A DNA stretch of 63,461 nt, counting the filler, from Choristocarpus tenellus KU-1152 (Eukaryota > Protista > Phaeophyceae): the NCBI GenBank assembly GCA_964200185.2. It is 11 parts of 11 records of this genome, joined end to end, with 100 filler letters (N's around TTAATTAATTAA, not from the genome) between each part and the next. Parts side by side here need not be neighbours in the genome. Positions count along the whole stretch, not along the records: positions 3,296 to 22,274 come from CAXNAD020000502.1; 10 more parts are not named here. The stretch is one strand, 5' to 3'. Positions 3,296 to 23,701 of the stretch are shown here, in pieces. A model generated the notes under the pieces. It searched no databases and was not told the origin of the DNA. It was given only the letters and a program-made list of their open reading frames with translations. Numbering within the stretch: position 1 is the first letter of the stretch; each line of letters opens with the position of its first letter. The translations under genes and the position numbers were made by a program.

Positions 3296-3389
3296 AATGC
3301 CTACAAAGGCTTCCTTTAACGGCCATACCCCCCCTGTTTCTTTCTTAGGTGTAACCTCCCATCTTTAACAGTAGCCTTTTTTTTCACAC

Positions 3390-3533
3390 CATTATCCCAT
3401 ATTTGTACACAGGGTGTTGTAGGAGGTATAGTTATTCATTTCCCTACCCCCTTGTTTATATTAGTGTACCCTTCTTTATTCGCATATTTTTGTTATGTTC
3501 TCGTCCAGTCCATTTTTCTTCCAACTGTTGCAA

Positions 3534-3564
<31 letters not shown>

Positions 3565-3960
3565 CTTTTAACATACATCTACTGCCAATCCCCAGTTCTT
3601 ACTTTCGAGACGTTCACCCCACCTTAGATTCCCACCTACTGCCTGTCCATCCAGGACTCTGCCATTATCTGTACTTAATCTCGTAGCTGCGACTCAACCT
3701 AGAATCTCCACCTACCCTGTGGCCTCATTCGGTACTCTGGAATCCTATGTAGGTTTTCTTATTTGTTTTGTTTTCTATGCCACGTTATTTCCCAGTTTGT
3801 AGCTATAACCCATAAATTCTATGGCCTTCCTGTCCATCTAGACCTCCATCTATTAAAATGGTTATCTTCAATCTTTGATCTTCAACTTGTTCATACACTG
3901 GTATTTGATATCCTGAGTATATCAACAATATAAGATGTCAAGAACATGATTTCTATTTTT
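3390..3960 (-). repeat. Dispersed degenerate repeat (probable retroelement relic); second copy at ~62940-63170 in opposite orientation
   Basis: The reverse complement of 3720-3810 (tagctacaaactgggaaataacgtggcatagaaaacaaaacaaataagaaaacctacataggattccagagtaccgaatgagg) aligns by eye with 62977-63058 (tagctacaagttgggacataccgtgatataaaaacaaaaaaataagaaaacctgcatagatatttcagagtaatgaatgagg). Similarity continues on the flanks. Confidence 0.6.
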
Positions 3961-4399
3961 GTTTAAAAGTAGGTTCTGTAAGAAACAATTAGATGATGGA
4001 AGAGAATATCTTTGTATTGTGAAGATTAGGAGATAACCTACAGATTAATGAACTAAAATATGGAAGAGTTCAGGAATAGGAAAAATTGTAGCAAGTAAAT
4101 TGCGATTAGTGATTAGTCATCCAAGGAATAGGATTGGTTTGTTGGCAAACCCTCCCCCCCCCTTAGGGTTGAAGGCCCACTACTCCTTTCTCCTTCCTTA
4201 CTTCATCTACAACCTGTCCAACCCAATAAGGAATTAAGAAAGTAATTTATATGCACCAGTCTTGGGAAACATCAGCTTCTTCAACATGCCAGGTAGCATT
4301 ACTTATTGAAGTGTGCTAAGTTTTCAAGGTTAGCATGAATTGATTAGAGGAGGAATCCCGATGGAGGCGGCCATCAGTAACAGCAGATGTGCTTTGAAG

Positions 4400-5660
4400 A
4401 AGTCCTGAGTATAGAGGAAGGACATCAGCAACTTTAGTTGAAGATGGTGTGGAGGAAGTTGAGTCTAACTTCAAGGATGAAGATGAGGAGGCGGTTAGCA
4501 AAACCGTGCACATTGCAAGATAGGGTCTGCAACGACTCATCCCACTCCCTACGAAGTTCGTGGTGTACAACAATGATGATGATGGAGAGGGATATTCTAC
4601 CTACGACTCATCCCACTCCCTGCGAAGTTCATGGTGTACAAGATGATGATGATGGGGAAGGATATCCTACTTTGGAGATAAACTTCCTTTTGTGTGCTTT
4701 TATGAGCGGATGAAAGGATATTCTTTTCACCCAGGACAATGTAAGAGTGAGCTGCGCCAATTTTGATGAAACAGGATGAATTAAGAGAGGAGCCCAAGAA
4801 GTCAGTAGTATGGCTATGGCGACTTTGGTCATGGGCTTAGGTGGACTTGCACAATACATTGCTGACAATTATGAGAGTCCATCAGATGCGTTTGAGGCAC
4901 CTAGGAATCATTTTCCTCGCAACAGGATTACGGAAAGAGCTATTTTGTATTACAAGCTAAATTCTCTTCATCCACCTGTGGGAGAAGATCTGACCTTATC
5001 ATTAAGTAGTTGGACAAGCTGGTGAAGAAGATGAGGTCGATTAATGATGAGCCTAGCACGGAGGTCCAGTAAAGCACAATACACAATGTATTGCCTTGAT
5101 GAGGAGTACTTTGTCGGGATCAGACAGATTACTGGAGAAGGGGCGTGCAGTTAGACCCAATCTACAAGAGAGAGAGCTTGCGAAGCGTATCGGATGTGTA
5201 AACATCAACAAGAAATAGACGAATGGATAGCAATTATGGGGCACTTGATAATGGATGGAGCCTGTGCAAGAGGTGGAACTACAGGGTGTTGAAAGGGTCG
5301 ATAAGTGGGACATGTGGAGTGCTGGTTGTGTTTAGGACTGCACTTTCAATCTTCTTGCCCTTCTGCTGTTTACTCACATTCCAGATCTCACGTAGGTGTT
5401 TGCCGTGTTTGCTGAGGGAAAGGGTCCAAGGCTTACAGCTGCCCTCAACATGATGGGGCTGTTGGGTTGAATGGGCAAGGATCAAGTAAATCTGGAGCAA
5501 CCACTCCAGAAAAGAGGAAAAGCAGGAAAGGAAATGGGAGAGGTGACAGTAAAAATGCTGGTGAGATTGGAGAAGGAGGAAGCATAGCCAATGGTACACC
5601 TTTGCAGTTTGGCAAATTATCATCGGTAGGAGATGATGGGAATACATCTAGTTCGCGCTG
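4400..5660 (+). mobile_element. Degenerate LTR-retrotransposon gag (copia-like) with decayed zinc knuckle
   Basis: 'MATLVMGLGGLAQYIADNYESPSDAFEAPRNHFPRNRITERAILYYKLNSLHPPVGEDL' fits the copia gag (UBN2-like) helical pattern. 'CRVC*GKGSKAYSCP' at ~5401-5445 is a decayed CX2CX4HX4C. Stops and frameshifts throughout. Internal 71-bp duplication at ~4532-4670. Confidence 0.6.
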
Positions 5661-5709
5661 GGGGGCATGTTACAGGCAATTATCGTGTCTACTTCCGCGC
5701 TCTAACCAG

Positions 5710-6220
5710 TGTGAGCAGTCTTGCTATGACACTCCCTATTTTTTTGTTATTGTTAGATATCTTTGTCTATATTTCTACTGCAAATTTCTATGTGAAAGTG
5801 AGACACGTTTGTATCTTGTATTTATTTGTGTTTATAATTCTGAAAGGAGAGAATCTTTCTATGACACAACCCTATTTGAATGTTATGGTGGTTTTGTGTC
5901 TGCATTCATCTATCTTGATAGTTGTGAAAGGGGAATGTCTTACATGACACTTACCTGTTTTTATGTTATTGTAAGACATTGCCTTTGTACATATCTTCAG
6001 AGTTCCTAGAGAGGGTAAGCCTTTCTATGACAACACCTTATTTCTCTTTGACTGTGAGATATTATTTTAGTGTCCTGTAGCTGTTTGTGCTTTAGTTCTG
6101 AAGGAGGGGAGTCTATCGAAGTACCCTAATTCAGTGTTATTGTGTATTGCGTCTATATTTCCCTTTGTTCCATGGTTTTGAAAGAGGGAGTCCTTTTAAG
6201 ACAATACCCTAGTTTGGAAC
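5710..6220 (+). repeat. Degenerate tandem repeat, about 6 units, mostly 80-90 bp
   Basis: Recurring core GAAAGRGGG-n-TCTTTCTATGACAC-n-CCCTATTT-n-TGTTATTG at ~5712, 5841, 5925, 6008, 6099 and 6180. Confidence 0.7.
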
Positions 6221-6689
6221 GAGTGTGACTCTGGTATAGGAGGTTAAAACATAGGCTACTCATTTGTTTCCTGCCGATATGATACACATACTACCAGCTT
6301 GTACTGACTGTTGATTGGTGCACTGCACTGGTTGTTAGTGTTCATTTATATATTACGCATTCCAACTCATCATCACATCGATGACAGTAAATAGAAGCAT
6401 AGCATCAGTTGATATTCAGTTGGTCCACATCACATACAGGAACATCATAGCACACGTCATCCAAGTCACTTCGGAACTTGCATCAAGTGCGTTCCACTGT
6501 TACCTTGTGTTCCCCTTTCTATTTTGTTATTGTTGTCATCTCTGTTCTTCCTTTTTATATGACAAAACCCCAGATGCACGGTAATTGTTGTTTATCATTT
6601 TATTGATTGTCGATGTCCCCTCACTGAGCACCTCAATGCCACTCTGCAAACTGTGTATCAAACACACACACATGGATGTAATATAATCA

Positions 6690-7230
6690 GAGTTAAAACC
6701 ATCTGCGGAAACCCTTGCCAGTCAAGGTAACAAGCCTCTCCACAGAGCATGAACTTCTTTCGTTGTCTTCTACGAGCTTCGCAGTCCAGATACAGCCTTG
6801 TGGATTGGAGTTACACATCCCAACATGGTAAGCTTGTGGAGCGTTTTGTAACACAATGTATGATTCGATAATAGCCTGCGCATTGACCTCTGGTTCAGGG
6901 AATACCTGACCAAGGAAACGCGCGTCAAGGGCACCCCTATCGCGTTCAGTTGTACCACATGAAAAGACAGCTCCCAGAAACATTTCAGAGTCTTAGAAAT
7001 ATCCCCCTCAATACACAACCAGGGTTTCTTGTTACGCCTTCATAGGTCGTAAGGCCCTCTCCAATAAGGGCACTTGAGTTTTGAGTGTTGAGTTCAGAGC
7101 ATCCACAGATGAGCAGATGTTCGTGGCTTGGGAAGCCACACATAATCCCCCAACATAAACATTGTAGAAGTAGTAGGAGATTATGAGTGACTGAATCGGA
7201 TTCATTTTTCAATGGCATTTCACCTGTTGC
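6690..7230 (-). mobile_element. Second degenerate gag-like relic (LTR retrotransposon)
   Basis: 'EGDISKTLKCFWELSFHVVQLNAIGVPLTRVSLVRYSL' resembles the copia gag G.d...fl..f..l..qL.aiG.pi motif. Broken reading frames. Confidence 0.35.
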
Positions 7231-8891
7231 TTGAGTTCATACACTATTAAAATACAGCAGTTGAGGTACTATTTTATGGTTTGCTTGTGCCAAGCCAAAA
7301 AACAGACCTTATTGACTGACATGCCTTACTGAGGAAAGCCAGGTTAAGTCATGAGCCAACATTTGGGGTCTGAAATGCCTTAAATGGACTTCTTTTTAAA
7401 AAATGCCTGTAACGGCTCAAAAAATGTTCTTAAAAATAGTGTTATACACATGTGTACAGCTTGGATTTTTCAGTAAGGAGTCACGTTGTGTCCTTGCAAT
7501 ATTATGCATGATTCATCTGATCCCAGCGAGAAAAACAAAAGTCGGTAATGATTAGTTCATCGGAAATAATGATGTACCCCATCTAAGGATGGGGTAGAGT
7601 CACTATTTGGACAGCAGTTACACGGCACAAACACTGTAGATAGTAACACAGTCATACCACAATAAACACTCTGGATGCCATGGTTTTCTAACCACCTTCT
7701 CGTTGCCCTCCTGACTTGCAAGACAGACTTTCTAAAATGAAACAAGAAATGGCGATTCTTTCAGCAGAGATACACAATTATATGAACAGCCTTTGTTCTA
7801 TGTGTTCAAAGCACCAAGGTTTTGGAACCTTGTTGTGTGCCCAAGACCTTGTCTCCGAACATCAATTACTTCACAAACCTCGAGATGTGCCCACATTCCG
7901 TGGCAAGTTGGCTGAAATATCAGTGGGAGGACTTAGGCTGCTGACAGTGCCACCATCAAGAAAACAGTGTGCGGTTAGCGGGTTGGCGGATACTTCAACC
8001 TTCTTGAAAGCATCCACTTTAGACACCTTGGGGACGTGTGGCACATAAAAACACAGAACAGTGCTATCTAGTGTCCTTGTTGACCATCATCTAACCAAGA
8101 AAATTAAGGACAGGTTCATGGCTACGAGTAGTGAGTACCTCAAGGTGGAAATGCTGGGAATGGTACCTATAGTTCTAGACCAGAACATTGTTGTGTAGGT
8201 GGATCATCGGGAGTAAAGCTGATTGAACATGCAATCTGGCACAGCATTCTAGGAATTCTACTTCATGTTCCTTGGAGGTGGGTTATCTCAGGCGATATAT
8301 GCATACTCCAATGTCACAACCAATGGGTAGTACAGCACTACTACACACTACCAGAGTACATCAAATGAAAGAATAAAAAACATGTGCAAAACTGAGGCAG
8401 TAGACAAGTGACAGTATCTGCGCATCTATGTTGGGATGGGACAGGCACACAATTAGAACTTACACAACATTTACGAGCCTTGGACGACTTGTAACAATAA
8501 TTTGGTTGTGCATGATGCCATGACTTTAGGATCAGATGGTTTGTAAATTGTCCTACAGATCTTAAAAAAACCTCTACTTAGCACGTAAGCTGTCCAACAA
8601 CACATGTATCAAGATGCTGCATTGGGAATGTTGCCCTTAGTTGTATCTACCGCTCAACCTAGACCATCAACATCTGTCACTGGTCAAAGGGTTCCACAGA
8701 CTGTCCACTATCTCAATGAAGCATTAATAATAAATGCTAAGTAACAAAAAGCAATTATCTCATCATCTAATACAAAGAAATACAAAGAAAAAGAATGGAG
8801 GAGCAATTTTTTCAGCAAGGTCTCTGTGAATGGTAATGGAGGAGAGCAAGGTGTTCCTCAAGCGTAAACAAAAATAAATGAAATGGAAATT

Positions 8892-10458
8892 TTATCGAGG
8901 TCTGGACTCATCTTGTAGCAGAGTCAGAATCTTGCTGAATGGAGGTCGATCACCTGGCCAGCTTGCCCAACACGACTGCATCAACTGGTGCAGAAGACTA
9001 GGGGCGTTGTCGGGGATGTCAGGGCGCCCCCCACTGCAAACCTCCAGAAGGACATCCATCGGCCTCCCCACATCTGCCCAAGGCAACTTTCTGGTCACAA
9101 TTTCCCAAACAACAATGCCAAAGCTGTATACGTCACTCTCCAAACGTATCCTTTCCTGATTCAAAACCTCTGGAGCTGACCACTTGAGAGTCAGGCCAGG
9201 CTTGTGCAAGGTGGCTAGGGTGGTGTACTCCTCAACCGTCCGTACCGTGCCAAAGTCAGCAATCTAGAAAGTATAGGTATTAGAGGGTGGGAATTGCAAG
9301 TTGAAGATTGGGGAGGGGCCGATCCACCGCATGCAAAGTACAATATCCCAGCGGAAGTAATTCTAAAGATAATTTCGTGAACACATGTGGAGACAACTGC
9401 AGATGTGTAGCAGGTTCTGGAATGAATCGAGGTTGACCAAATAGTTTCCATTTAACACACTTCGAAATCCTTGATACAGGACGAACAGAAAAGCTATTGC
9501 CCTCTTGGGAAGACACAGTTTATAGTACATCTTGGAACAATATAGGGTGTGTGCTTGTCCCTCACTCATTCTTCTTCCTCACTCGTCATCTCACTCAGGC
9601 TCGACATAACATATTTGATGTCTTCCACTTTGACTGGTCATAGTGCTGACTCATGTAAGTACAGAACCAACTCTATTATATGGGCACCATTGATTGTTCT
9701 AGAGGTGATTACGATATTTCGTGGTGGGAGCAATATGTTATTTCCTTACTTAGAATGGCCTCCATATGAGCAATGAAATAATCTACAAGTTCTTCAAGAA
9801 GTGGAACCAATACTACCATTCAAAAAGGAGGCAATGGAGAGGTACTGCTTTGAACACTCTTACACAGAACCCCAATCAAGTCCACCACTTCACCTCATGC
9901 ACTACAACTTGAACACTTTCAATATACACACACCTTAGCTTGGTTCTTGTTGTTCAGGAGAATGTTGGCAGACTTGAGGTCCCCATGAATCATCCCCTTC
10001 GAGTGAAGGTACTCCATCCCCAATGCAATATCCAAAGTCAGAGTGTGAGAAAAGTGCTCCTCGAGTGGTGCACTGTCTTTGCTCAGCAATGACCTTAGGT
10101 CTCCCCCCTCCATAAACTCCATGAGAAGTACAAGCCTTCCTGGCGATTTTGTAATGGCACCATACACATTGACGGTGTATTCAGACCGAAGGAGTACCAT
10201 GACATGTAGCTCCTTTGCAAAAGTCGTCTTCAGGCGTTCAGCAGCTGGTGCATTGTTGTCCAGGTCATTGAAATCCACTACCTTTGCCGCAGCCAGATGT
10301 CCATTGTATTCCACGAGCTCCACTGTGCCGAATCCTCCCTTGCCTAGCTTGGCCACATCTGGGAAGAATGTTACCTGATCCTCTGGCACCTCATGCTGCT
10401 GCAGCATTGCTGCCCTTCTACGCTTCCTTTGAGCAGCCTTGCGTTGGAGCTCTTGGGA
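8892..10458 (-). CDS. Exons 5-6 of the receptor kinase: TKL-type protein kinase domain
   Basis: Exon 9934-10458 carries GKGGFG...HGDLKSANILL...QAK. Exon 8892-9263 carries IADFG...TLKWSAPE...SDVYSFG...WASWPGDRPPF. The intron between them is phase 0, GT-AG. Confidence 0.93.
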
Positions 10459-13400
10459 CTGGGTTTGAGGGAGCGACAGTGGGGGGCATAGAGTGTGAAT
10501 AGAAAGGCAATGCAGAATTGAGCATATTGTTTCAACTGTTTTGAACTGTGTTCTCTGCACACCCAAAATCTTGGTCTTGTGCTTAGCACAAATCGTTCAA
10601 GAGAGAGAAACATCAGGGGCTTTACACTTGCCGGGGTAACTGTCACAGACCAGGGCCATGAAATGCCTCGGTAAGAGCGTTTTTTAAGGCTTAACCAATG
10701 CCGTAGGGATTTTAGGTGGGTCAGTCCATGAACTGAGTCTATAAAATCATATGCTAAGTAAAAAAAGGGTCGAGTCAGGGCCTTCAGGGGTTACTACCTG
10801 GCTGGCCAGCAGGCCAGCTCCCGAAAGATATACTACATAGTACATGGAAGGACCAGGATGGACGGTTCACACATGAATTGTAAATTTCAACCTTCGAAGC
10901 AAATAATTTGTAGCTTAATGTCACCAACATATTTACAATTTCTTAAGTAATAAACGCAATATAGATGAAACAACAGGAGTAATCCATTCACTGAAAAGAC
11001 TGGTCTGGGACATCAAATGCATTTAATGGTACAAGCCTGGGTGAAATGTTATTTACCCGTGCCAGGTCAGAGAATGAGAAACATTTGAAAGCCAGTCCAG
11101 GAGTCATCAGTAATACTACAGGGTCAGGCCTGCCCAGTCAACTGGTGGTCTGGTGTAAGACCCTCGAAATATCACTATGTTGATCTCTCTACAGTTATAG
11201 TATTTCGAACAATGTACTCAATGCATACAATGACCCAAGTGCGACAAGATGGGTTAAGACATGTAGCATTTACCACTACGCAGTGGAAGATGTGATCAAT
11301 ACTTAGAAATCCAAGCGCAACACACACAAAACGTAATATACACAAAGTAGGATACCTAAGGAGGCAATTTTGAAGGTTTAGAATGCACACTACTCCCAAG
11401 AAGAATGTATCACAACATCTTGATATGCACCACATTCCATACAAGTTTCTGCGTACTATTGAGCTTGTCCCATGTAGCTCAGGTGGTCGTCCGCTCACAT
11501 TCCGTGACAGGGGTGCTTGGGTTTGTACCCCCATTACAGATTTCAGATATTCTTCGGAGGATATTTGATGGTAATGGACCACGTGGAAAAGTGCATCGGG
11601 AAGGTGCACCTTGACCCTTGCTAACTTGAGTTAAGTCATACTAAGGGACGCGCAGAAATATCTGTATCGCGGTGGCAAAGATTCATTGCAGATGGAGGGA
11701 GTATGCACCAGATTTGAGGGAGGAGGCAGAGTGGCGAGAAAGATTAAGGCTTTCACTAAGCAGTGCAAATAGTGTAGTGCAATGGGTAGTTTGTAGGGTA
11801 GAAGTAATAGTACAATGTGCACTGTTATTTGACTACGGGTCAGGGGGCCAGGTAGGGTGGAGGTAATGGGGAGTTCCAGGCTACCAGTAAGCATATTGAA
11901 ATAATAAATAGTAATGGTAATAGTAATAATAGTAATGATCCTGCAAAAAAGATCAAATAGTATTTGCCACAAGAACACAAACTTCAGTTCAGTAGAAACG
12001 AGTATATATTCTATCTCATGCCTGGACAAGGCTATCCACAGCAGTGGACGTCTTCCTAGCAACGTTCAGGGCCTCAAGCGCCATTCCAGTCTGCAGTCGC
12101 TGGAGAGTATCTCGGAGGGCTTCCTCTGCCTCCGCTTGACGCCTCTTGAAAAGGGTTGACGAGAACATGCGACCCATTGTGCCCTTGGCTAGAAAGCACT
12201 GCACGATCTGTGCAAGAGAAACAAAGGGAGGGTTACATTTTGGGTTTGTGATCTACGATGGTTCCATGTGCTTACATGTTCACAGGATGAGGGTATGAAC
12301 TCAGCCAAGAAATGAGGGTAGGGAAGCATTCCATTCCACGCAGCCTTCAAATACTAGGGGAGATGGACAGTTACTACAAGAGTGGGTAAGGCTAGAGGCA
12401 CAACCTGAGAATATTGGAAGAGTGAAAGAGTGGTTCAGAAAGGAGGTGCAAAGGATGGATGCTACATATTAATTTCAGATATCTAGATAGTCTTGCGGTT
12501 CCATTCCGTGGCTTGATGATCAAATGGTGGTATCGCTTGGTGTATGCGTTTTGTCCTGCAATGATATAGTCAGTTCGAAGCTCAAGACAAGAAACTGACA
12601 GATGCAAGTAAGAAGAATGGATAATAGGAGAAAGTTGGTAAATACAACCGAAACGACACCTGCACCAAGCATTCCCCTCAAAGTAAGAAACTACTGTGCA
12701 CCTCAACACGATCTAGTCTCACTACAGTAATCGATGTTTTCGGGACTATTTATAAAGCAGAGGACTTCGTAGACAATACATATGTACTGCACAAGGTATG
12801 GTTTGCAGTAGAACGCAGCAAAAAGTGTGTTAGATATTTTGAGGCATGATACTTGTGTGCATTGACCAACTAATCCACTGTATGGTGGGCGACAAATTTC
12901 CAACACAAACATAGTTGAAACATGCTTTTAGACGATGCATTGTGTGACACACACATTAGAATACAAAATGTACAAGGTAACAAAGGGGTACACGTAAGGG
13001 TCACCCCACTGAAACGCAAATTCAGTCTTCCTTGCCACTTAAGAGAAAGAGGATAGTGTGAGGTTTTCAATATGTCAGTACTAAACACTCTCCTTGCTCA
13101 TCAATTGCAGGGTGAGAAATTGCAAACATACTTCGTAGTGGTTATATGAAACAATTGTTCAGCATTCTATCCCAACAATCTCTGAGCACAAAAATCTGAA
13201 TCGCAGTTATAAAAGAGGATTGCAAATGTTGGTATAATGGTATCAATAGCTTATGCATCTGGGGTTGTCCCGTCATAATGTTTGATGTAGACATAGGATT
13301 TAAAAAATAAAAGCATATTCGTGATGCCCGTCACAATGCCCTCCAGAGTTCGGGCTTCGTTTTTGTTTTTAGTCATTTTTTTCTTTTTTTGAAGAAAGAG

Positions 13401-16400
13401 CGGTCATATTGGGGTTTGAACCAAGGATTGTAGATCACCAAGAGTGGCAACAGATGCACTATTACTTGATTGGAGTACAGGGTTTTTTAGGTCGGAAAAA
13501 TGCCTCCCTACCCTTTCTTTCTGTGTGTTCGTGCACCCACTCTTTGACCTCGGCAAGGATGTCCTTGTCCAGGCCCAGAACGAAACGCCTCTCATCTCAC
13601 CCTTGCTCGTAGACCTTGATGTGGCCCTTAGTTATGAAGTCTCTCTCCCATTTACTCACAGTTTCCAACCTGACCATTGCATATCCTGCTGCCATCTCGA
13701 GCGCCATTTGACGGTCTTTCCCGTTGTTTATACACAGGTACAGGATTCGCAGTGTTAGAGCCTTTACTATCACATTTCCTCGTTGAGCACCGGAAATGGA
13801 TTGCCTTCTTTCGGGCTTCAGAGCCCTTATAGCCCAACCCGAACACCTTCTTTCTCGATTCCTAAGCCGCTCTGGCTCACATAGCTTCCAAATAATAGCC
13901 AGGGCCTGCGGCAAGTGTTGACTGCTAAGATATTCTACACCCAGGTTTTCACTTAGGCATTTCCTGAGCGCAATGGCATGCAGTTGCACTGCTCTCCACC
14001 CCAACCTTCCCTTCGGGCGGCCACTATGTTTCCTTCGCCCACCATGACCAGGCTTCCCCACAGACTTCGTCACTGTACCACCTGGTGATGGAATCGCCGC
14101 TCTCTTTCTGCTTTTCCGAGGTGGCAGTTCTTGTAAAGCAGTTCTCCGAAGTGATCGAAGGTCCAACCACGTTTGTGTGGAAATAAATGCTTTCAATGCA
14201 TCTTCTCTCAGTGTCAGTGTCGCGACCGCGTGGTCCATTTCACGATTCAATCATGCTGCTGCCCACACCACTCACACTTTCTTGTCACCTAACATCGTAC
14301 TCAGTTTCACACGGTACTTGTTTTTCCAGTCCCTCTCGACAGAGGAAGGTGCCGAGGGTAGATCCAGACGGCAGAGTGGCCTCGGCGCCTCTCCTTGTCC
14401 CACCACCGCGGTTCATGTTGCAGTGTAAGTCACGTGCGTGTGTCCTCACAGGAAGTCTGTAAAAGGCGTTAAAAAGACGTCCAGAAATCTTGAAATATTT
14501 TTCGGTACAACCGCACCAGTCAAACTTGGGCAGGGACCTACCCAGGACCAGTTTTCTCCAAGCAGTTCAGCCAAACACTTCATTTTTGTATCTTTTGAAG
14601 TCGTAACCTTCAAAATTGCACGGGAGATATTCCTCTACGTTTTTTTTTCCATTATTTGATCGGGACATAGCTCCCGTTCCCTGAAGCTTATACAAGCATT
14701 CACTACAACCCTTCAAAAGCTCTTGTCATAAGCTTTCATTTGATATCTATATTGTTATACATCTATTGCGGCTATACGGTGAAGAAATTCAAGATTGCCA
14801 CAGAGGGCGAAGCTACTGGAACCACTTTAACATTTAGAAGCTACGAAGCGTAGAGGATGGATTCGCCATAATAAAAAACTTCCATATTTCAGCATGTAAG
14901 CTACTTATACTGGAGTAGTTGGTGATTCTCGCGCAGTACTTGTCTTTATCTTATGAACTATGGCACAAATCAAATGTAAAAAAATATACCTGCCTTCAAA
15001 CACGTGAATATACAATGTGACTTGTTATGCAATTGACTCTGGTTGAGACGGTCCCAACGAGACACAACCAAGTACCACAACAAACCTGTAAGACAGGAAA
15101 CAGAGAGAGTTGCCAATGCCCTTTCTTCAGCACCAATTACCATACATTTATAGTCGATCACATGGACCACATAGCGGGGGGATTGAGGGAGATCACTAGT
15201 TGAACTGGTTATGCACATATTAAACCCCTAGCATCACAAACACAAATGTAATGGAATTGGAGCTCACTGAATGTCGATCACCTTGACAAGGTCTTCAATT
15301 GAGGAGTGTGCGTCCTCGAGAAGATCCGTAACAATGGCTGAGAGAGTCTGCAAAATAGGGAAGCAGACCAGATGGCAATCAAAACGAGTACAGATCAGGC
15401 ACAAGGGCAAGCATGATGAATCCTGGTAGATGAAGGACAGTGCAGAAACAAAGGAGTTTGGGGAGAAGCAAGGGGATGTGACAGTCCAGCAAAGTAGCAA
15501 AAACTGAACAACATGTGAGCTGAGAACTCAACCCTCAATCTCACCTTTTGTGAGCTGACTTCCTCAAGCATTTTGAGCATTGCATCACACCACCTTAGAG
15601 ATTTGGCCATATCCCTCTCGTTCTCCTTGTAGTCAGTTGTCAGAGTAGCCATCATCCCAATGAGGGTTGCTGTCTCCTTTAGGAGTGGCAATGTGGAACT
15701 AGAAGCGAGCTGAAGAGCAGCTGAAGCAACCCGTTTCGACATTTCTGACAGGCTTCCGATCTCACCAATGTTATCAACACCAGCACATAAAATACCAGAC
15801 CCCACCACAACAGCGGGTAACACTCCAACATGATTTTCCTTTTCACTTGCACAGTCGTCCAGACCGTTAAACATCCCCAACTCTACCCCATCCTCATCTG
15901 TCTGATTTCTTGACTTTCCTTGGACATCCCCCTTGCCTCGCTTATGACCCTCATCTACTGGACCCATGTGACGTAGCAACACCCTGTGACCAGACATGTC
16001 AACAGCGAGCTCGAAGGGAAATGAAGCTGTGCTTGTCCTCATAGGTGTTTGCCTCTGACAAACCTTGAGCGGTGAAGGAGGATGGAGTCGCCTCCAAACC
16101 AAGATAGAAACAGACAACACCACTGCCGTGGCACCAACCGCCAAGCCAATCACAAGTGCAAAAGATGAGCTGGAGCTGGAACAACAATATGGGATGGGTG
16201 AGTGTCAATCGTGAGTGCAGGTTTGTCGAATTTTCGTGTGAGAATAAATTTCCTCATCAACTTCAGGAAAGCTCTCCAAGGTCTTTGCCACAATAGCATC
16301 AGTGCAAGGTATGGCAGGTTGGGAATGCCAACTGGAGAATGAGTGTTGTGCAACGGATAGCTGAGGCGCACACGTGCAAGTAAGGTATCTATAATTAACA

Positions 16401-18114
16401 TGTAGCACAAGAGGTGAAGGTGGATGATCGAAGTGAGCAGAAGGATCCTACTCGTACCACTATGTATCAGCCGTACCAGCCATCCCAAATGTACATCCGA
16501 GAGAGAGGTATTTCCTTCTTCAGCAAAGAAGTAATTTAACATACTACTATTACTTCATTCTCCATGAAGTTTACATCCTTCTGCCACCTGTTATCCAGTG
16601 TCTTGCTTCCACATCCATATATTGATACAATATGTGCATAAATAGAAGTTTCATGATGCTACATTGGGTAGGTTTAAACTCTCACAGTACCTCAGGATAA
16701 TACCTGGGCATTTGAAGCATCCAAAATCACGGTGCCACAGTTTCTATGTTGGTTGAGGGGGAAGATACTACCTTATTTCTGGAATGTGCAGCAACAAGAA
16801 GGTTGCTATTGCTTCTCCTTACCACAAAAGAAGAATACTTTGCATACCTTTGTTGACTTGCTGTCATGTCTCTATTTCAGAGGGCTAGTACCATAGGTTT
16901 GTGTGGGACGCAACCAACTGAAAAAAAGTTGGGAAAGGGGGCATAACTACGATCATGAGGAGAACAAAGAAATAAGTTCAATGTAGGGGTCCTGATGCTT
17001 ACCTTGAAATGTTTTCATACCATGTGACGCGGTGATCGTCGGCAGAAGTGGAAAGAACATCTATGTCACCATCGCCATCCAGATCCACTGCGATGACAGA
17101 GGTTGATCCCTCTGCCTCTGATGTAAGTAACTTGTCACTAGAGAAGGTGCCACTGCCCAAGTTCTCATACCATCTCACGCTGTCATCGTCAAAAGATGCG
17201 GAAAGGACGTCTATATCACCATCCCCATCCAGATCTGCTGCATAGATGTAATAGGCACCTAATGCCTCCGAAAAAATGTCTGTTCCACTTGAAAATGTTC
17301 CGTTTCCATCAATATTCTCATACCATCGGATCGAATGGTTATCATGATTAGCTGAGACCACATCCAAGTCTTCATCACCGTCTAGGTCGGCTGCATAGAT
17401 GCTGTATACTTCTGGAACGTCTGAAGCGATAACTGTACCATTTGTGAAATTTCCCAAGCCATCCAAATTTTCAAACCATCTCACACTACCATCAATTCGC
17501 GATGCAGAGAGCACATCCATGTCACCATCACCATCAATGTCGACTGCAGAAACAGACCAGACCCCTTTTGCTTCAAGTGTTATGGTCTTGTTTGTTGTGA
17601 AGTTTCCATTCACATTCTCAAACCACACAATTAAGCCTGTGTCAAAAGAGCCAGTTAGTATATCCTTATCCCCGTCATTGTCAAGGTCTTCCACATATAG
17701 AGCATAAGGTTCCACCAACATCATAGATGTGATGACCACTCCCTCAAAAAATTCACCACCCTCATTCTCATACCAAACCACATAGTCGTCGAAGAAAGAA
17801 GTCGCCAGTACATCCATATCTCCATCGCCATCTAGATCAGCAGCAAACACATGACCTGCCCCATTGACCTTTGAGCTTATTACCGTTCCTTGCGAAAACT
17901 GCCCAAAGCCATCCTCATTCTCATACCATTGTATTGTGTCATCCTCCCAAGATGCTGACAGTACGTCAAGGTCACCATCTCCATCCAGGTCAGCAGCAAA
18001 CACTGTCTGCGCTTCTGAAGCCGATGTTGAAAGATCAGTTCCACTGGAGAAGGTCACAGCAGCAGCACCCTGAGCCCACACCACAAAAAACACAACTTGT
18101 ATCCACATGGTCAT
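8892..18114 (-). CDS. Receptor-like kinase: signal peptide + 7x FG-GAP beta-propeller + TM + MLKL-like four-helix bundle/brace + non-RD TKL kinase (963 aa)
   Basis: Model: complement(join(8892..9263,9934..10458,12022..12207,15282..15347,15545..16175,17003..18114)) = 2892 nt, open throughout and phase-consistent. All introns are GT-AG except one GC-AG. Signal peptide MTMWIQVVFFVVWAQGAAA; seven DxDxDxDxD motifs; TM FALVIGLAVGATAVVLSVSILVW followed by RR; kinase motifs GKGGFG, AAK, HGDLKSAN, DFG, WSAPE, SDVYSFG, RPPF. Confidence 0.85.
13400..14680 (-). mobile_element. Truncated IS630/Tc1/mariner-like transposase (N-terminal/HTH region) inside intron 3 of the receptor kinase
   Basis: ORF 13597-14250 ends 'ALEMAAGYAMVRLETVSKWERDFITKGHIKVYEQG*' and continues in frame as 'DERRFVLGLDKDILAEVKEWVHEH'. 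This fits the N-terminal region of DDE_3-type transposases. No catalytic domain is retained and the boundaries are approximate. Confidence 0.5.
15545..16175 (-). CDS. Exon 2 of the receptor kinase: TM helix, cytoplasmic linker and first helices of the MLKL-like bundle
   Basis: Acceptor ttgttccag|C and donor AAG|GTGAGA. A hydrophobic 23-mer is followed by RR; later comes PLLKETATLIGMMATLTTDYKENERDMAKSLRWCDAMLKMLEE. Confidence 0.8.
17003..18114 (-). CDS. Exon 1 of the receptor kinase: signal peptide and FG-GAP (integrin-alpha/VCBS-like) seven-bladed propeller
   Basis: Seven repeats of consensus A..V.AADLDGDGD.DVLSAS..D..V.WYEN..G.F. The exon ends at AG|GTAAG (phase 2). Confidence 0.92.
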
Positions 18115-20369
18115 ACAACCTGCTGGTGTGATTGAGTGGGGAAAGGTGGGAAGGGGACAGGGACAGGTGCAGCCCCGAATGTGAGGAACATGACTCACAG
18201 AAAGAGTAGAAGGCAGAACCAGGTTCTTTGCTGTACAGATGCAAGTAGTGAGGAAAGCTGGACGAAATAGAAATCCCAGGTGTTCCCTGCATGACTGATT
18301 CCGGAAACAAGCCTCATATACAGGCAGCCTTAAACCAGGACATGAACAACAAAATTAGAAATCCATATCATCAGCACATAGGTAGACTCAGTCCAACAGA
18401 ATCAAGTGCAGAATAACCCATGTGGGTCGATTTTGATTGCATCTACTATCACATAGTCAACTCGAACAATGTAGGAGAAAAGTGTAGTCATCATCAATTA
18501 CTCAGTACAAGTCTTGGTGAAGGCCCAGCCGTGCACATGCAAGTCAACGAACAATAGTCTTGTTCGACTGAACTCAGGCTGTACTTGCTTGACATGAGAT
18601 TAAAGGCTTCCTATAACCTGTTTCCTGTCTACTACAGCACTAAGGGCATCATATAGCATCCACCCTATGTCACTATTAATTCACCCTCCACCAACAATGT
18701 ATTGCATTCCCTCACCCTCATTTTTCTACTCCATCCTATGCCGCTCTACATCATCTGTCACAGCAGTACAGCAATACGTACAATACCAACTCTGACCTAA
18801 GAAACAGATCTTTTGCAAGTGGTAAAAGAATACTTGAGGTCTACGTATGTGACAGAAAAACGTTTGTAATCTCTTTCTGTGTTGTTCGCCACCAAAAGAT
18901 TTTGCACCTTTGGCCTTGTCCTCAACTGCTGCTGGACTTGCCAAAACCACCCTTCTTGGTCCTCCAAACGTACATCACGCACACGTGCCCTTCCTATTGT
19001 AATCGTTGATCCCTTCCCAACACTGTCGGGCACGCCCATCCTATGCTACATTATCAACCGTCCCTCCTCCTCGGGTACCAGTACTGACGCAGGGGGAAAC
19101 TCTTACAGCGACTGTACCAAAAGAGAATATAGGAGAAGCACCTTCGATTCTATCCTACTCCACTTATCGGCGATAGGCAGGATTTGAGTGGTCCAGGTCT
19201 AAAACCCTCCAAGTCTCGTTGTTTCCTACGCATAGGTTGAACTCTACCGACCATTGGCAATCATTTGCAAAGCCTAGGGGTGCCAACTTCTTATCGTTCG
19301 TCACCATGTGAGGTTCAGCATGCTTCAAGTATTGGGAAAAAATAATTTGCATAAGGTCTTTCCCAACATCCCTTCTACAAACAATGGCACCCTGCAAATC
19401 ACAGACTCCGCACGAAAACTTGCTGTGGGTAGTACATTACTCCATCCTCTGCGACGCATGTCGCGAATCTTCTAGATCTTCCATTCATCCCAAACCCGAC
19501 CAGATACCCCCGGCTATGGCCTGTTGGTAAGATCGATTCATCATCCCGAAGGACTACACGACAAGAGGAGGACTGTGATCGATTTTTGCGGCTGTGAATA
19601 TACTCACCCCAACCAACTACAGTGTATTCCATCTTTTTTTGTTCCATACATTGCGACGCAGACATTACCCAGCGAGTTGGGTACCCCTGGTCAGGTAAAA
19701 TCCGACCCAAACCAGGGAAAGCACTCTTGAGAAAATATGCAATTTGAGGATCTAATCAAGTTCTCGCTCCTCACCAAACCTTTTTCGGTTCCAATATCAT
19801 AGGAGTAACACCTAGAATTGCTTTCAACCCTGCCCACAGTCTGCTTTCTCTTTCCCCTTAACTCGAAGTGACCTCCCCTCCCCCCTTTCCTCCATAAGGT
19901 ACCCCACTTCCTGGTACTAGCATTCTATTATCACATCATCCAGAAAAAAATTGAGGGAACCTACCTGTAGAACGTTCCCGGAAACTATTTTTTTTTGTAC
20001 TCCATACTATTGCAAAAAGTATTTTTCATTTTTATTTATCTCAACATCCCCTTTTGTATGTAAGGTAAGTCTGGAAAGCATGTTTGTCTTTTATTATACC
20101 GTTATTGCCGTATGAATATACCGTTACATTGTGGTACCAATTACCAATTAAGGTTCTCAGTCAAGGATTCCACGGACAGACTTTCTATTTTTATTACTAT
20201 GCCCTCTGACATTTTGCAGATGTGTCAGGGGAAAAAATGTTCTTATAGTGTTCTTATGTTTAGGTTATTTTATTTCTTTAGGGCAAATAACTTATATTTT
20301 TATGCCCTCTGACATTTTGTAGATGTGTCAGGGGGGAAACAAGTGAGAGTTTATGAAGTAAACTGAGTT

Positions 20370-20520
20370 TTGTGGGCGGCGAATGCCCTTCGTCACTGAT
20401 TGCCAACCATCCCCATTTGATGACCAACCAGTGCAAATGCCCTTTGTCACTGATTGCTAGCCATGACATTCGATGACCAACCAGTGCAAATGGCCTTCGT
20501 CACTGATTGCCAGCCATCCT
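20370..20520. repeat. Short tandem repeat, about 3 units of ~52 bp
   Basis: The unit gatgaccaaccagtgcaaatg(c/g)cctt(c/t)gtcactgattgc is repeated just downstream of the YR relic. Confidence 0.75.
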
Positions 20521-20689
20521 TTCAACCCACACAAGTTCCCACTCCCCTCAACCCCACAGCAGTTCTCACACCACTCAACACCACTCCCCAATCATCCAAG
20601 AAGACATCTACCCCGCCGTAACTTGACCTCCCCTCCCCTTTCGGGGTGGATTTCTTCTCTCTCATCTCGTTACCTCCTGACCTGGTTGT

Positions 20690-22250
20690 ACCCAATCCTT
20701 CCTACTCTCTGCCAAGCCCTCTGACACTGACACTGGATCCTTCTGGTTTGTCCTAACGTACATCATAAACGCCCTCGACTTCCCCCTTCCTTCCCGCTGT
20801 ATTACCAGTTCTGATACCCCCATGTTCGCCACTCTCGTGGCTCCCCCTATCCTCCCTGAATGCAAGGCATACTCCTCGGGTTTTAACTTACATTCCTTTT
20901 GACCCTGTAAATGTTACCTCTACCTTTTCTGCCTGGTGTCTATCCTCCCACCTTAAACTTTCTACTCTCCTCCTCCATACTATGTCCCTCCTTACTGCAA
21001 AATCTCCATGTACTCCTCCCCCTTCATCCTAGGCCCGCAATTCTGAGTCTCTGACTAAACAGACGAACGAGAAACCCAAACCTAGCCTTGTCAGTTTACC
21101 TTCCATACCTAGCATTTCAGAGCCTTTCTTTGTCTCTACAATCATTCTCCATGTTAGGGGTCTCCTCTTACTGGGCTCGCTCCCTACTTTTGTATGACTC
21201 CTCCCTATCCCTTTGAGCACCGATTGGATCATGACATGTTGTGTGGGGAGTTTGAAGTTGATGACATGTTTATGGTCGGATTGGGTTGCTGCTATCTTAC
21301 CCTTAACTGTACTTACTTAGTCCCCTCTACTTCGGCACTAGAAACACATAAATTCTGCTAGGGCCTTCACTACCCATATACTCTGCTAGGGCCTTCACTA
21401 CACATAAACTCTACTAGGGCCTTCACTACATCTATCTCTCGACTCCCAGGGTCTAACCACCTACTCAATCCTCTCTATGTATGGAACTCAGACCATTGGT
21501 CCCAAGCTTCTTCATAACACTCCTGAGTAGATGGCGCAACCGATCCTCTGGCGTACAATGCTGCGAGGCACTCGGACACACCATCTTCCCTTCCCAACCC
21601 ATGGGCTGTTCCTGCCAGTCCATATGTGGTCAAACAAGTCACAGGTTAGTTTGAATCTCGTCCCTCTTCCACCTCAATACACTAAATGCTAGGTCATTCT
21701 TTCTCCCTGTAACGTGTTCCACTGTGAATGACCATTCCCCTGCTGTCTCCTATATCCCCATTATTCTCATCAATCCCCCCCACCCTCCTATCCTTCGCCC
21801 CTCCACGCTTACAACATCAATGCACTACTTAGTAGTTGTCCCCTCCAAGCAAAACTGGATCTCCCTTCTTGTCTGCCTTCCCTTTCACCTTCATGACCGG
21901 TATCCATGCATTCAGTACCATTCCTAGTAACTCTTAGACAGTGAATGATATGCTCCTTTCTTCTCCCTTAATCACACTACATGTAATATCACCCTTCACA
22001 TGTTCTGGAAAGTCAAACCTCCACTACTTACCCGTCTCTACATTGTACCCCCCTACTGCTGAGAAAATCGCATCTGAGTACCAATTCATCCTTGGGGCCT
22101 TGACACAAACCCTCAAGGAGGGGGAACTCACGTTTTCTCCCTCCTCTGCCAGCCCATGTTCTACCCCCACCTCCACCAATACAAATCTTCCTTAAACTCT
22201 CTCCCTATCCTAATCTCCCTATCTCCTTCTCTTGGGCCTTCCCCTTGTAC
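20690..22250 (-). mobile_element. Degenerate DIRS/Ngaro-like tyrosine-recombinase retrotransposon (YR plus upstream RNase H-like remnants)
   Basis: 'HSGRIGGATRVANMGVSELVIQREGRGKSRAFMMYVR' matches the YR HS.R.GGAT...GRW.S.af..YvR boxes. 'VLKGIGRSH...RRPLTW...LGFSFVCLVRDSEL' matches YR box I. 'EHVTGRKNDLA' upstream resembles the RNase H hv.G..N.lAD motif. Multiple stops. Confidence 0.8.
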
Positions 22251-23701
22251 ACCCTGCCCCCCCCCCCCCCCCACNNNNNNNNNNNNNNNNNNNNNNNNNN
22301 NNNNNNNNNNNNNNNNNNTTAATTAATTAANNNNNNNNNNNNNNNNNNNNNNNNNNNNNNNNNNNNNNNNNNNNCCGCATACAGAATCAAGAAGGCGGGC
22401 TTTAAACGAGGTCTGAACAGATAGATAAGTGATGCCTCTTTTTTTTTTTTCTATGGACTGCGCACTACTCCAAAAAACTTACTTCTGTACAATAAATGAT
22501 GCAACTAATACCATGGGGGGACACGGTACGATCTAAGGACATCTACCGCCAACATCGCCATTCGTTCAACACACACAATCTACTCTTCTACGCCTGGTCA
22601 TACCGTCCTACACAAACTAAACCCTAAACCTATCCTGACTGCCGCTTGCTTGGAGCCAGAGCAACCGAGAGGGGGGGTGCCGGTGAGCTATGAGGGGTCC
22701 CTCTGACTCTTCCAGTGGGCCCTTAGCATGTCATCGGAGCACACAGCCCATAGCTATGGAGTGCATTTTGGTTGTTTTGCGAGTATTTGGTGAGTCACCT
22801 CACCTTGCAGAATCAAGCTGTCCCTATCAACACTCTTTTCTTCGAATGTCTTTCATGCCCTCAAAAAATAGTTGAATATCCCTACAATTCAAACCTACAA
22901 CACCCCCCCCCCTCTCTTGGTTTCTGTTGACTCGCTTGGGGTATCAATTCTGACCCTGCAGAGACCTTCTCCTAAACATATATTATAGCAATAAAGAATT
23001 TCGGAGTACCTTATCATTCCTAGGTCACCTTCATGTCAAGCAGAGCAACTCTGAACAAAACGGGATACTAGTAGAGCACCATCCAATCGTCGAGATACAT
23101 CATTCAACAAGACCCCAATACCACCACGGCAAGATGGGCAGGGCCGGTCGGGTAGTCAGAGACGGTTTTTCCCACCAAGTGCTCTTGAGCAGATTGCTGT
23201 GACACTGAAGGTGAACTACCAAACAACACATACTTCGTATCATACAAGGTGGGTATCATTGCCTCCCTGTGCAAGTCAAGCATTTAGAAAAAGTAAACTA
23301 CTGTAGAAAGAATCGCACACACACACACATATATATATAACATAAACAGCATTGAAACCATCTCAATGGGTTTCATGGTACCAAACATAGACAATAAATA
23401 TACCATCGGACTTTGAGTCCAAATCGGAGATTCCTGCCAACCAAAAATAATGGAGGGATTGTGACAATCAATATGCGATTCTTAGAAGGTGCATTCCCAA
23501 TATACATACATACATACATACCGATGATGGTATATGTGTAACACTATATATACCATCATCAGTTTCTCTCAGGGCATCTTACCAGGACCGGAGGCTTGCA
23601 TGTCCACTGTTGGCCATATCATCATGGCCTGGCCATGTTGAAACAGTCGATGGCCATGGATTTAGCCATGTTTAAAATTGGTTTTACAGGGTTGGCTGTC
23701 A

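Follow-up and report, generated by a model that had tools for sequence, protein, structure and literature searches.

Complex multicellularity arose in brown algae independently of animals and plants, and so did their receptor kinases. The brown-algal receptor kinases described so far carry leucine-rich repeat (LRR) ectodomains (Cock et al., 2010) or either LRR or beta-propeller ectodomains (Denoeud et al., bioRxiv 10.1101/2024.02.19.579948), and the literature that we searched on these receptors makes no mention of an intracellular helical domain or of a link to MLKL. Here we describe a gene on the minus strand of the 19-kb contig CAXNAD020000502.1 of Choristocarpus tenellus (genome size 164 Mb), which forms one part of a stretch of 63,461 nucleotides joined from 11 records (the window, along which all positions are counted). 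We found that the gene adds a member with an FG-GAP ectodomain to the known brown-algal receptor kinase family, and that it contains, between its membrane helix and its kinase, a helical domain that most likely belongs, as a remote relative, to the MLKL_N / HeLo-like / plant coiled-coil (CC) four-helix-bundle superfamily.

Like other brown-algal receptor kinases, the protein has a signal peptide, an ectodomain, one membrane helix, the helical domain and a TKL-like kinase with the motif HGDLKSAN; its kinase exon is 43–49% identical to receptor kinases of Ectocarpus and Scytosiphon. It differs from the known members in its ectodomain, which consists of FG-GAP/VCBS repeats, whereas theirs are LRRs or SBBP-type propellers. 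The described systems with comparable bundles are built differently. Animal MLKL (PDB 4BTF, 6ZVO) combines a four-helix bundle, a brace and a pseudokinase, while here the bundle is internal and the kinase looks competent. In plant MLKLs and in the CC and CC-R domains of NLRs (Rx_N, RPW8/NRG1, MLA13) the bundle is N-terminal, fused to an NB-ARC or kinase-like domain and soluble, whereas here it lies inside a membrane receptor. The fungal HeLo, HeLo-like and SesA domains are distant kin of the MLKL four-helix bundle, and HeLo and MLKL domains work via a free N-terminal helix (PMC10197012). One member of the family studied here, P0029, matches SesA, but neither the membrane-prone N-terminal helix of fungal HeLo and SesA domains nor their amyloid or NLR trigger is seen in the window protein. 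An MLKL_N-type bundle recognised inside a receptor with an apparently active kinase has not been described in the literature that we searched.

The helical domain was first noticed as three peptide pieces, thought to be spliced from separate exons, and these do sit in minus-strand open reading frames (ORFs) at 15751..15545, 15347..15282 and 12207..12022. No sequencing run with an RNA label is on record, and run X3 was used as the transcriptome; it is RNA-like, with a depth of about 385 over exons and 1–3 over introns. Reads and contigs were placed on positions 11000–16900 of the window. A single X3 contig of 3683 nucleotides lies on 16181..15545, 15347..15282 and 12207..12022, breaking exactly where the original prediction had put the exon borders. 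Its two joints, 15545 to 15347 (skipping 197 nucleotides) and 15282 to 12207 (skipping 3074), are both GT..AG on the minus strand. The splice sites around the three pieces are canonical and in phase 0, namely a donor AAG/GTGAG at 15545, borders AG/ACT and AAG/GT on either side of 15347..15282, and an acceptor AG/ATC at 12207. At its lower loose end the contig continues from 12022 into the kinase exon at 10458; 12022, the lower limit originally proposed for the domain, is therefore the true donor of the third piece. The intron that begins there (sites 12014–12027 and 10452–10466) has a GC donor, CAG/GCATGA, and a normal AG acceptor and is thus a GC-AG intron. At the other loose end, at 16181, the contig continues into the end of the upstream FG-GAP exon.

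Checked exon by exon and by phase arithmetic, the model comprises six exons and 963 codons (the sum of the exons) with consistent phases and zero internal stops, and the gene is expressed as RNA. The spliced transcript rules out a pseudogene or chance ORFs. The features of the gene are as follows.

18114..17003, minus strand: exon 0, with the start codon, a signal peptide (MTMWIQVVFFVVW...) and the FG-GAP/VCBS ectodomain; donor TCAAG/GTAAGC, phase 2.
16175..15545, minus strand: exon 1, with the membrane helix, a linker of about 110 residues and helices alpha0 to alpha2 (15751..15545); acceptor ttccag/C, in frame with exon 0.
15347..15282, minus strand: exon 2, 22 codons encoding the first part of alpha3; transcript joints on both sides.
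15281..12208, minus strand: intron 2, 3074 nucleotides, holding a high-copy repeat; skipped in the transcript contig.
12207..12022, minus strand: exon 3, 62 codons encoding the end of alpha3, a short turn helix, alpha4 with LFKRRQ and the start of the next linker; GC donor.
10458..9934, minus strand: kinase exon 1, with the basic linker QRKAAQRKRRR, QHEVPEDQV, GKGGFG, the AAAK lysine and HGDLKSAN; acceptor cccag/TCC.
9263..8895 plus the stop codon (to 8892), minus strand: kinase exon 2, with IADFG, SAPE and the C-lobe; acceptor tag/ATT.

The encoded protein is a type-I, single-pass receptor kinase whose parts follow in the order signal peptide, FG-GAP ectodomain of beta-propeller type, single membrane helix, disordered linker of about 110 residues, helical domain, basic linker and TKL-type kinase. 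Exon 0 matches Pfam FG-GAP_3 at 6e-69 over eight stretches, and exon 1 opens with a hydrophobic helix of 23 residues (about 16162..16094) followed by RR. Both kinase exons match PK_Tyr_Ser-Thr (2e-25 and 3e-23). The kinase motifs are complete (GKGGFG, the AAAK lysine, HGDLKSAN, DFG and SAPE), and judged by these residues the kinase is apparently catalytically active. As had been remarked at the outset, QHEVPEDQV directly precedes the glycine-rich (Gly) loop GKGGFG. The segment from alpha4 to the Gly-loop, where the original prediction had two more helices, contains a basic motif that is conserved and reads RRxRRQxKL across the family and QRKRRR in the window; in models of paralogues this segment forms at most one helix, at low confidence.

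We found the same arrangement well beyond this locus. Six-frame searches revealed eight further loci with matching exons in the same genome, two of which have annotated spliced proteins, P0001 and P0008. An exhaustive HMMER search with the P0001 domain gave 96 database hits at E<=1e-3, of which about 19 cover the domain in full. Named members come from Ectocarpus and Scytosiphon, among them CBN73941 and CBJ29593 of Ectocarpus, both annotated as "leucine rich repeat kinase", and in these relatives the order is LRR, helical domain, kinase. A profile of 20 relatives matches the window exons colinearly (exon 1 at 67.8 bits over profile positions 14–77, exon 2 at 10.1 bits over 91–107, exon 3 at 44.8 bits over 108–165), which is far beyond chance. 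Exon 2 aligns with the same exon of P0001 and P0008, and exon 3 ranges from 81% down to 33% identity with its paralogues. A Cys in alpha2 and the Arg of LFKRRQ in alpha4 are invariant or nearly so across the family alignment. The window kinase is 43–60% identical to those of family members, which have HGDLKSAN in common with it and almost all of which keep complete kinase motifs. Both the domain order and the position of the helical domain between membrane helix and kinase place the gene in the brown-algal family, and the helical domain is a conserved hallmark of that whole family, present in the LRR, SBBP-propeller and FG-GAP types and in some soluble paralogues.

The two annotated paralogues depart from the common plan. 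In P0001 (locus L014, G000:C7963) a signal peptide, an SBBP beta-propeller and a membrane helix come ahead of the helical domain, and the exon junctions are those of the window gene; a kinase is absent from the annotated protein, and no kinase exon was found in the remaining 2 kb of its contig. P0008 (locus L016, G000:C1564:1-9000), the closest relative of the window gene (identities of 51%, 61% and 44% for exons 1 to 3 and of 58% and 53% for the two kinase exons), combines the bundle with a kinase-like domain in which HGN replaces HGD and the Gly-loop is a degenerate GKGNFS, and its annotated model has no membrane helix. Taken as annotated, P0008 gives this genome a soluble protein of MLKL-like build; its gene model may be incomplete at the 5' end.

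Having placed the domain in this family, we turn to its resemblance to MLKL_N (Pfam PF22215; profile length 142, gathering cut-off 27 bits). Whole-domain tests, namely Pfam, folding and the protein language model, were run on spliced relatives with protein identifiers, and the window was tested as single exons. In a Pfam scan of the alignment rows, MLKL_N was the commonest family, matched by 8 of 24 rows in the same register and over profile positions of about 23–135. The best match was the excised domain of P0015 at 27.7 bits (E 2.2e-6), followed by P0005 (21.7 bits), P0011 (21.4 bits), P0003 (20.9 bits) and four weaker ones, all seven of these scoring within 12–21.7 bits. Rx_N was matched by five members and SesA by one (P0029, E 0.005–0.009); both are recognised distant kin of the MLKL four-helix bundle (PMC10197012).

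Structure prediction points the same way. In an AlphaFold model of P0008:120-310, with a predicted local distance difference test (pLDDT) of about 90 over residues 20–150, helices span residues 18–35, 39–58, 63–85, 90–116, 120–123 and 127–153. The helical domain is thus predicted to be a compact five-helix unit in which the extra helix alpha0 comes before an up-down four-helix bundle. The bundle is connected in the manner of MLKL, and the loop between alpha3 and alpha4 holds a short helix, as in the MLKL_N fold; a plain coiled coil, which the original prediction had named as an example of an outcome that would overturn it, is not what the model gives. Although P0008 has no Pfam match in this region, its domain led a protein-language-model search to MLKL_N clusters (0.91 and 0.90), and its first structural neighbour was an Rx_N cluster. 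The model superposes on the mouse MLKL four-helix bundle, the Rx CC, the MLA13 CC and the NRG1 CC-R, with scores within the noise range for helical bundles. Taken as a whole, these matches of profile and fold, weak as they are, agree with one another and make remote homology to the MLKL_N/HeLo/CC bundle class likely.

Several observations weigh against this assignment. Exons 1, 2 and 3 have no Pfam match of any kind when scanned singly, and P0001 and P0008 have no MLKL_N match; the resemblance first proposed for the window therefore holds as a remote, family-level one, carried by eight relatives that match PF22215, and not for the window exons taken one by one. In full-length proteins the MLKL_N match falls under the cut-off (P0015 23.4 bits, P0113 22.9 bits); because of this, and because introns split the domain, it was missed by routine annotation. 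A search of the family profile against PDB sequences returned zero MLKL entries, and Foldseek against the PDB returned nothing at E<0.1. Shape searches of the Atlas gave nothing specific, and an Atlas feature search with exon 3 alone gave nothing clear. A six-frame search of the genome with PF22215 gave two weak matches elsewhere and none at the window locus. The better of these (L022, G000:C19562:488-616; 18.4 bits over profile positions 4–46) lies outside the receptor kinase loci and may be another bundle-bearing gene.

The architecture also argues against a close likeness to MLKL. The domain had been called N-terminal, which is wrong here: the bundle does not stand at a free N-terminus, the place that it has in the executioners, and ahead of it come the signal peptide, the FG-GAP ectodomain, the membrane helix, the linker and the extra helix alpha0. 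Nor is the protein MLKL-like in its kinase, since the catalytic motifs are intact: it is a receptor kinase and not an MLKL-type pseudokinase, and HGN occurs only in P0008. The kinase that follows the bundle in the window protein is thus not a dead one, and the linker helix, as modelled in paralogues, has low confidence. For a two-domain model of P0008 (residues 135–573; pLDDT 80, predicted template modelling score 0.78) the only PDB matches were to kinase domains, the best being those of FES, BRAF and CTR1, and against the PDB it showed no superposition on full-length MLKL and did not recover an MLKL-like brace or arrangement.

Given these results, the locus is probably best explained as encoding a single-pass brown-algal receptor kinase whose helical domain is a remote MLKL_N-type bundle. 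The picture implicit in the original prediction, a soluble MLKL orthologue with an N-terminal four-helix bundle, a brace and a pseudokinase, shares with this locus the order bundle, linker, kinase, but is hardly credible: the kinase retains the Gly-loop, the lysine, HGD...N and DFG, the relatives are annotated as LRR receptor kinases, and in the transcript the FG-GAP exon runs on, in frame, into an exon that opens with a membrane helix. We rejected it on the in-frame junction of membrane helix and ectodomain. A second alternative denies any MLKL_N ancestry and takes the bundle as a lineage-specific juxtamembrane helical module, for dimerisation or regulation, the matches reflecting generic antiparallel four-helix bundles. 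Most MLKL_N matches do fall short of the cut-off, and there are none among the closest relatives of the window gene; GIT1_C, another four-helix-bundle family, is weakly matched in five members; and PDB sequence searches lack MLKL, while designed helical proteins rank above MLKL structurally. On the other hand, the best MLKL_N match (E 2e-6) is about three or more orders of magnitude ahead of unrelated families, the next being DAHL at 0.0018; eight members match in one register with nearly the whole profile covered; the repeated matches to Rx_N and SesA are to distant kin of the MLKL bundle (PMC10197012); and the language-model search with a member that has no Pfam match again reaches MLKL_N clusters. 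We consider a purely generic bundle rather unlikely.

A third alternative accepts the MLKL_N-type fold and ancestry but gives the domain another task. By analogy with the death domain in IRAK/Pelle kinases, it could serve as a homotypic adaptor, drawing in soluble paralogues with the same bundle, such as P0008, and making no membrane contact. The bundle is internal and tethered, and its N-terminal helix therefore cannot be released; the same genome encodes both P0008, modelled without a membrane helix and with degenerate catalytic and Gly-loops, and the kinase-less P0001, in which propeller, membrane helix and bundle are combined. These soluble and kinase-less gene models may, however, be incomplete, and we regard an adaptor role as possible but doubtful.

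Under the favoured reading of a receptor kinase with a remote MLKL_N-type bundle, we propose tentatively, by analogy with MLKL, that the bundle may work as a switch under the control of the kinase, kept at the inner side of the plasma membrane. A ligand bound by the ectodomain would turn the kinase on; the packing of the bundle would then be altered, and the bundle released, by phosphorylation or a conformational change; and the released bundle might either self-associate and act on the inner leaflet or bring in partners. The output could resemble that of MLKL and CC-NLRs, with ion flux or cell death, or be no more than the assembly of a signalling complex. We know of no RIPK3-type partner of this receptor kinase. 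That the bundle would permeabilise the membrane, again by analogy, seems unlikely. Less likely still is the boldest version, in which the brown-algal receptor kinases at the cell surface have an MLKL-type executioner built in, the kinase, once switched on by an outside ligand, unlatching the membrane-tethered bundle so that an oligomer opens the plasma membrane or forms a cation channel, and in which the cassette of bundle and TKL kinase shares ancestry with animal and plant MLKL. Were the bundle assignment true for the whole family, a third lineage would have the module of cell-death executioners and NLR resistosomes coupled straight to its surface receptors, which would offer a testable idea for brown-algal immunity and signalling and a new data point on the age of the pairing of bundle and kinase. 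If the executioner version held, a single protein would link pattern recognition to necroptosis-like death or to calcium signalling.

The same-genome paralogues are present in the protein collection as NCBI "unnamed protein product" entries. An annotated spliced protein for window positions 8892–18114 was not found in a word search with the P0008 domain, which returned P0008 only, and the FG-GAP exon as query returned only bacterial-type VCBS proteins at 30–52% identity, its own spliced protein not among them. The public gene model for this interval may be missing, split or longer than the ranges searched. The transcript contig extends about 2.8 kb upstream of exon 1, about 1.6 kb beyond the coding part of the FG-GAP exon (17003–18198 plus upstream sequence), and this surplus of about 1.6 kb is either a long 5' untranslated region or further upstream exons.

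Within positions 3296–22274 we found no tRNA and no Rfam family. The high-copy repeat in intron 2 spans about 13170..14940, where the depth of a DNA run is 1000–23000 (13167..14939) compared with about 20 alongside. It contains an ORF of 217 codons on the minus strand (13597..14250), which has no Pfam match. Scored copies of this ORF in the genome number at least 151, from 1887 candidates, and most copies contain stops. The repeat is probably a transposable element. Elsewhere on the contig, a TA-rich microsatellite at 3456–3578 reads YIYIYI in two ORFs.

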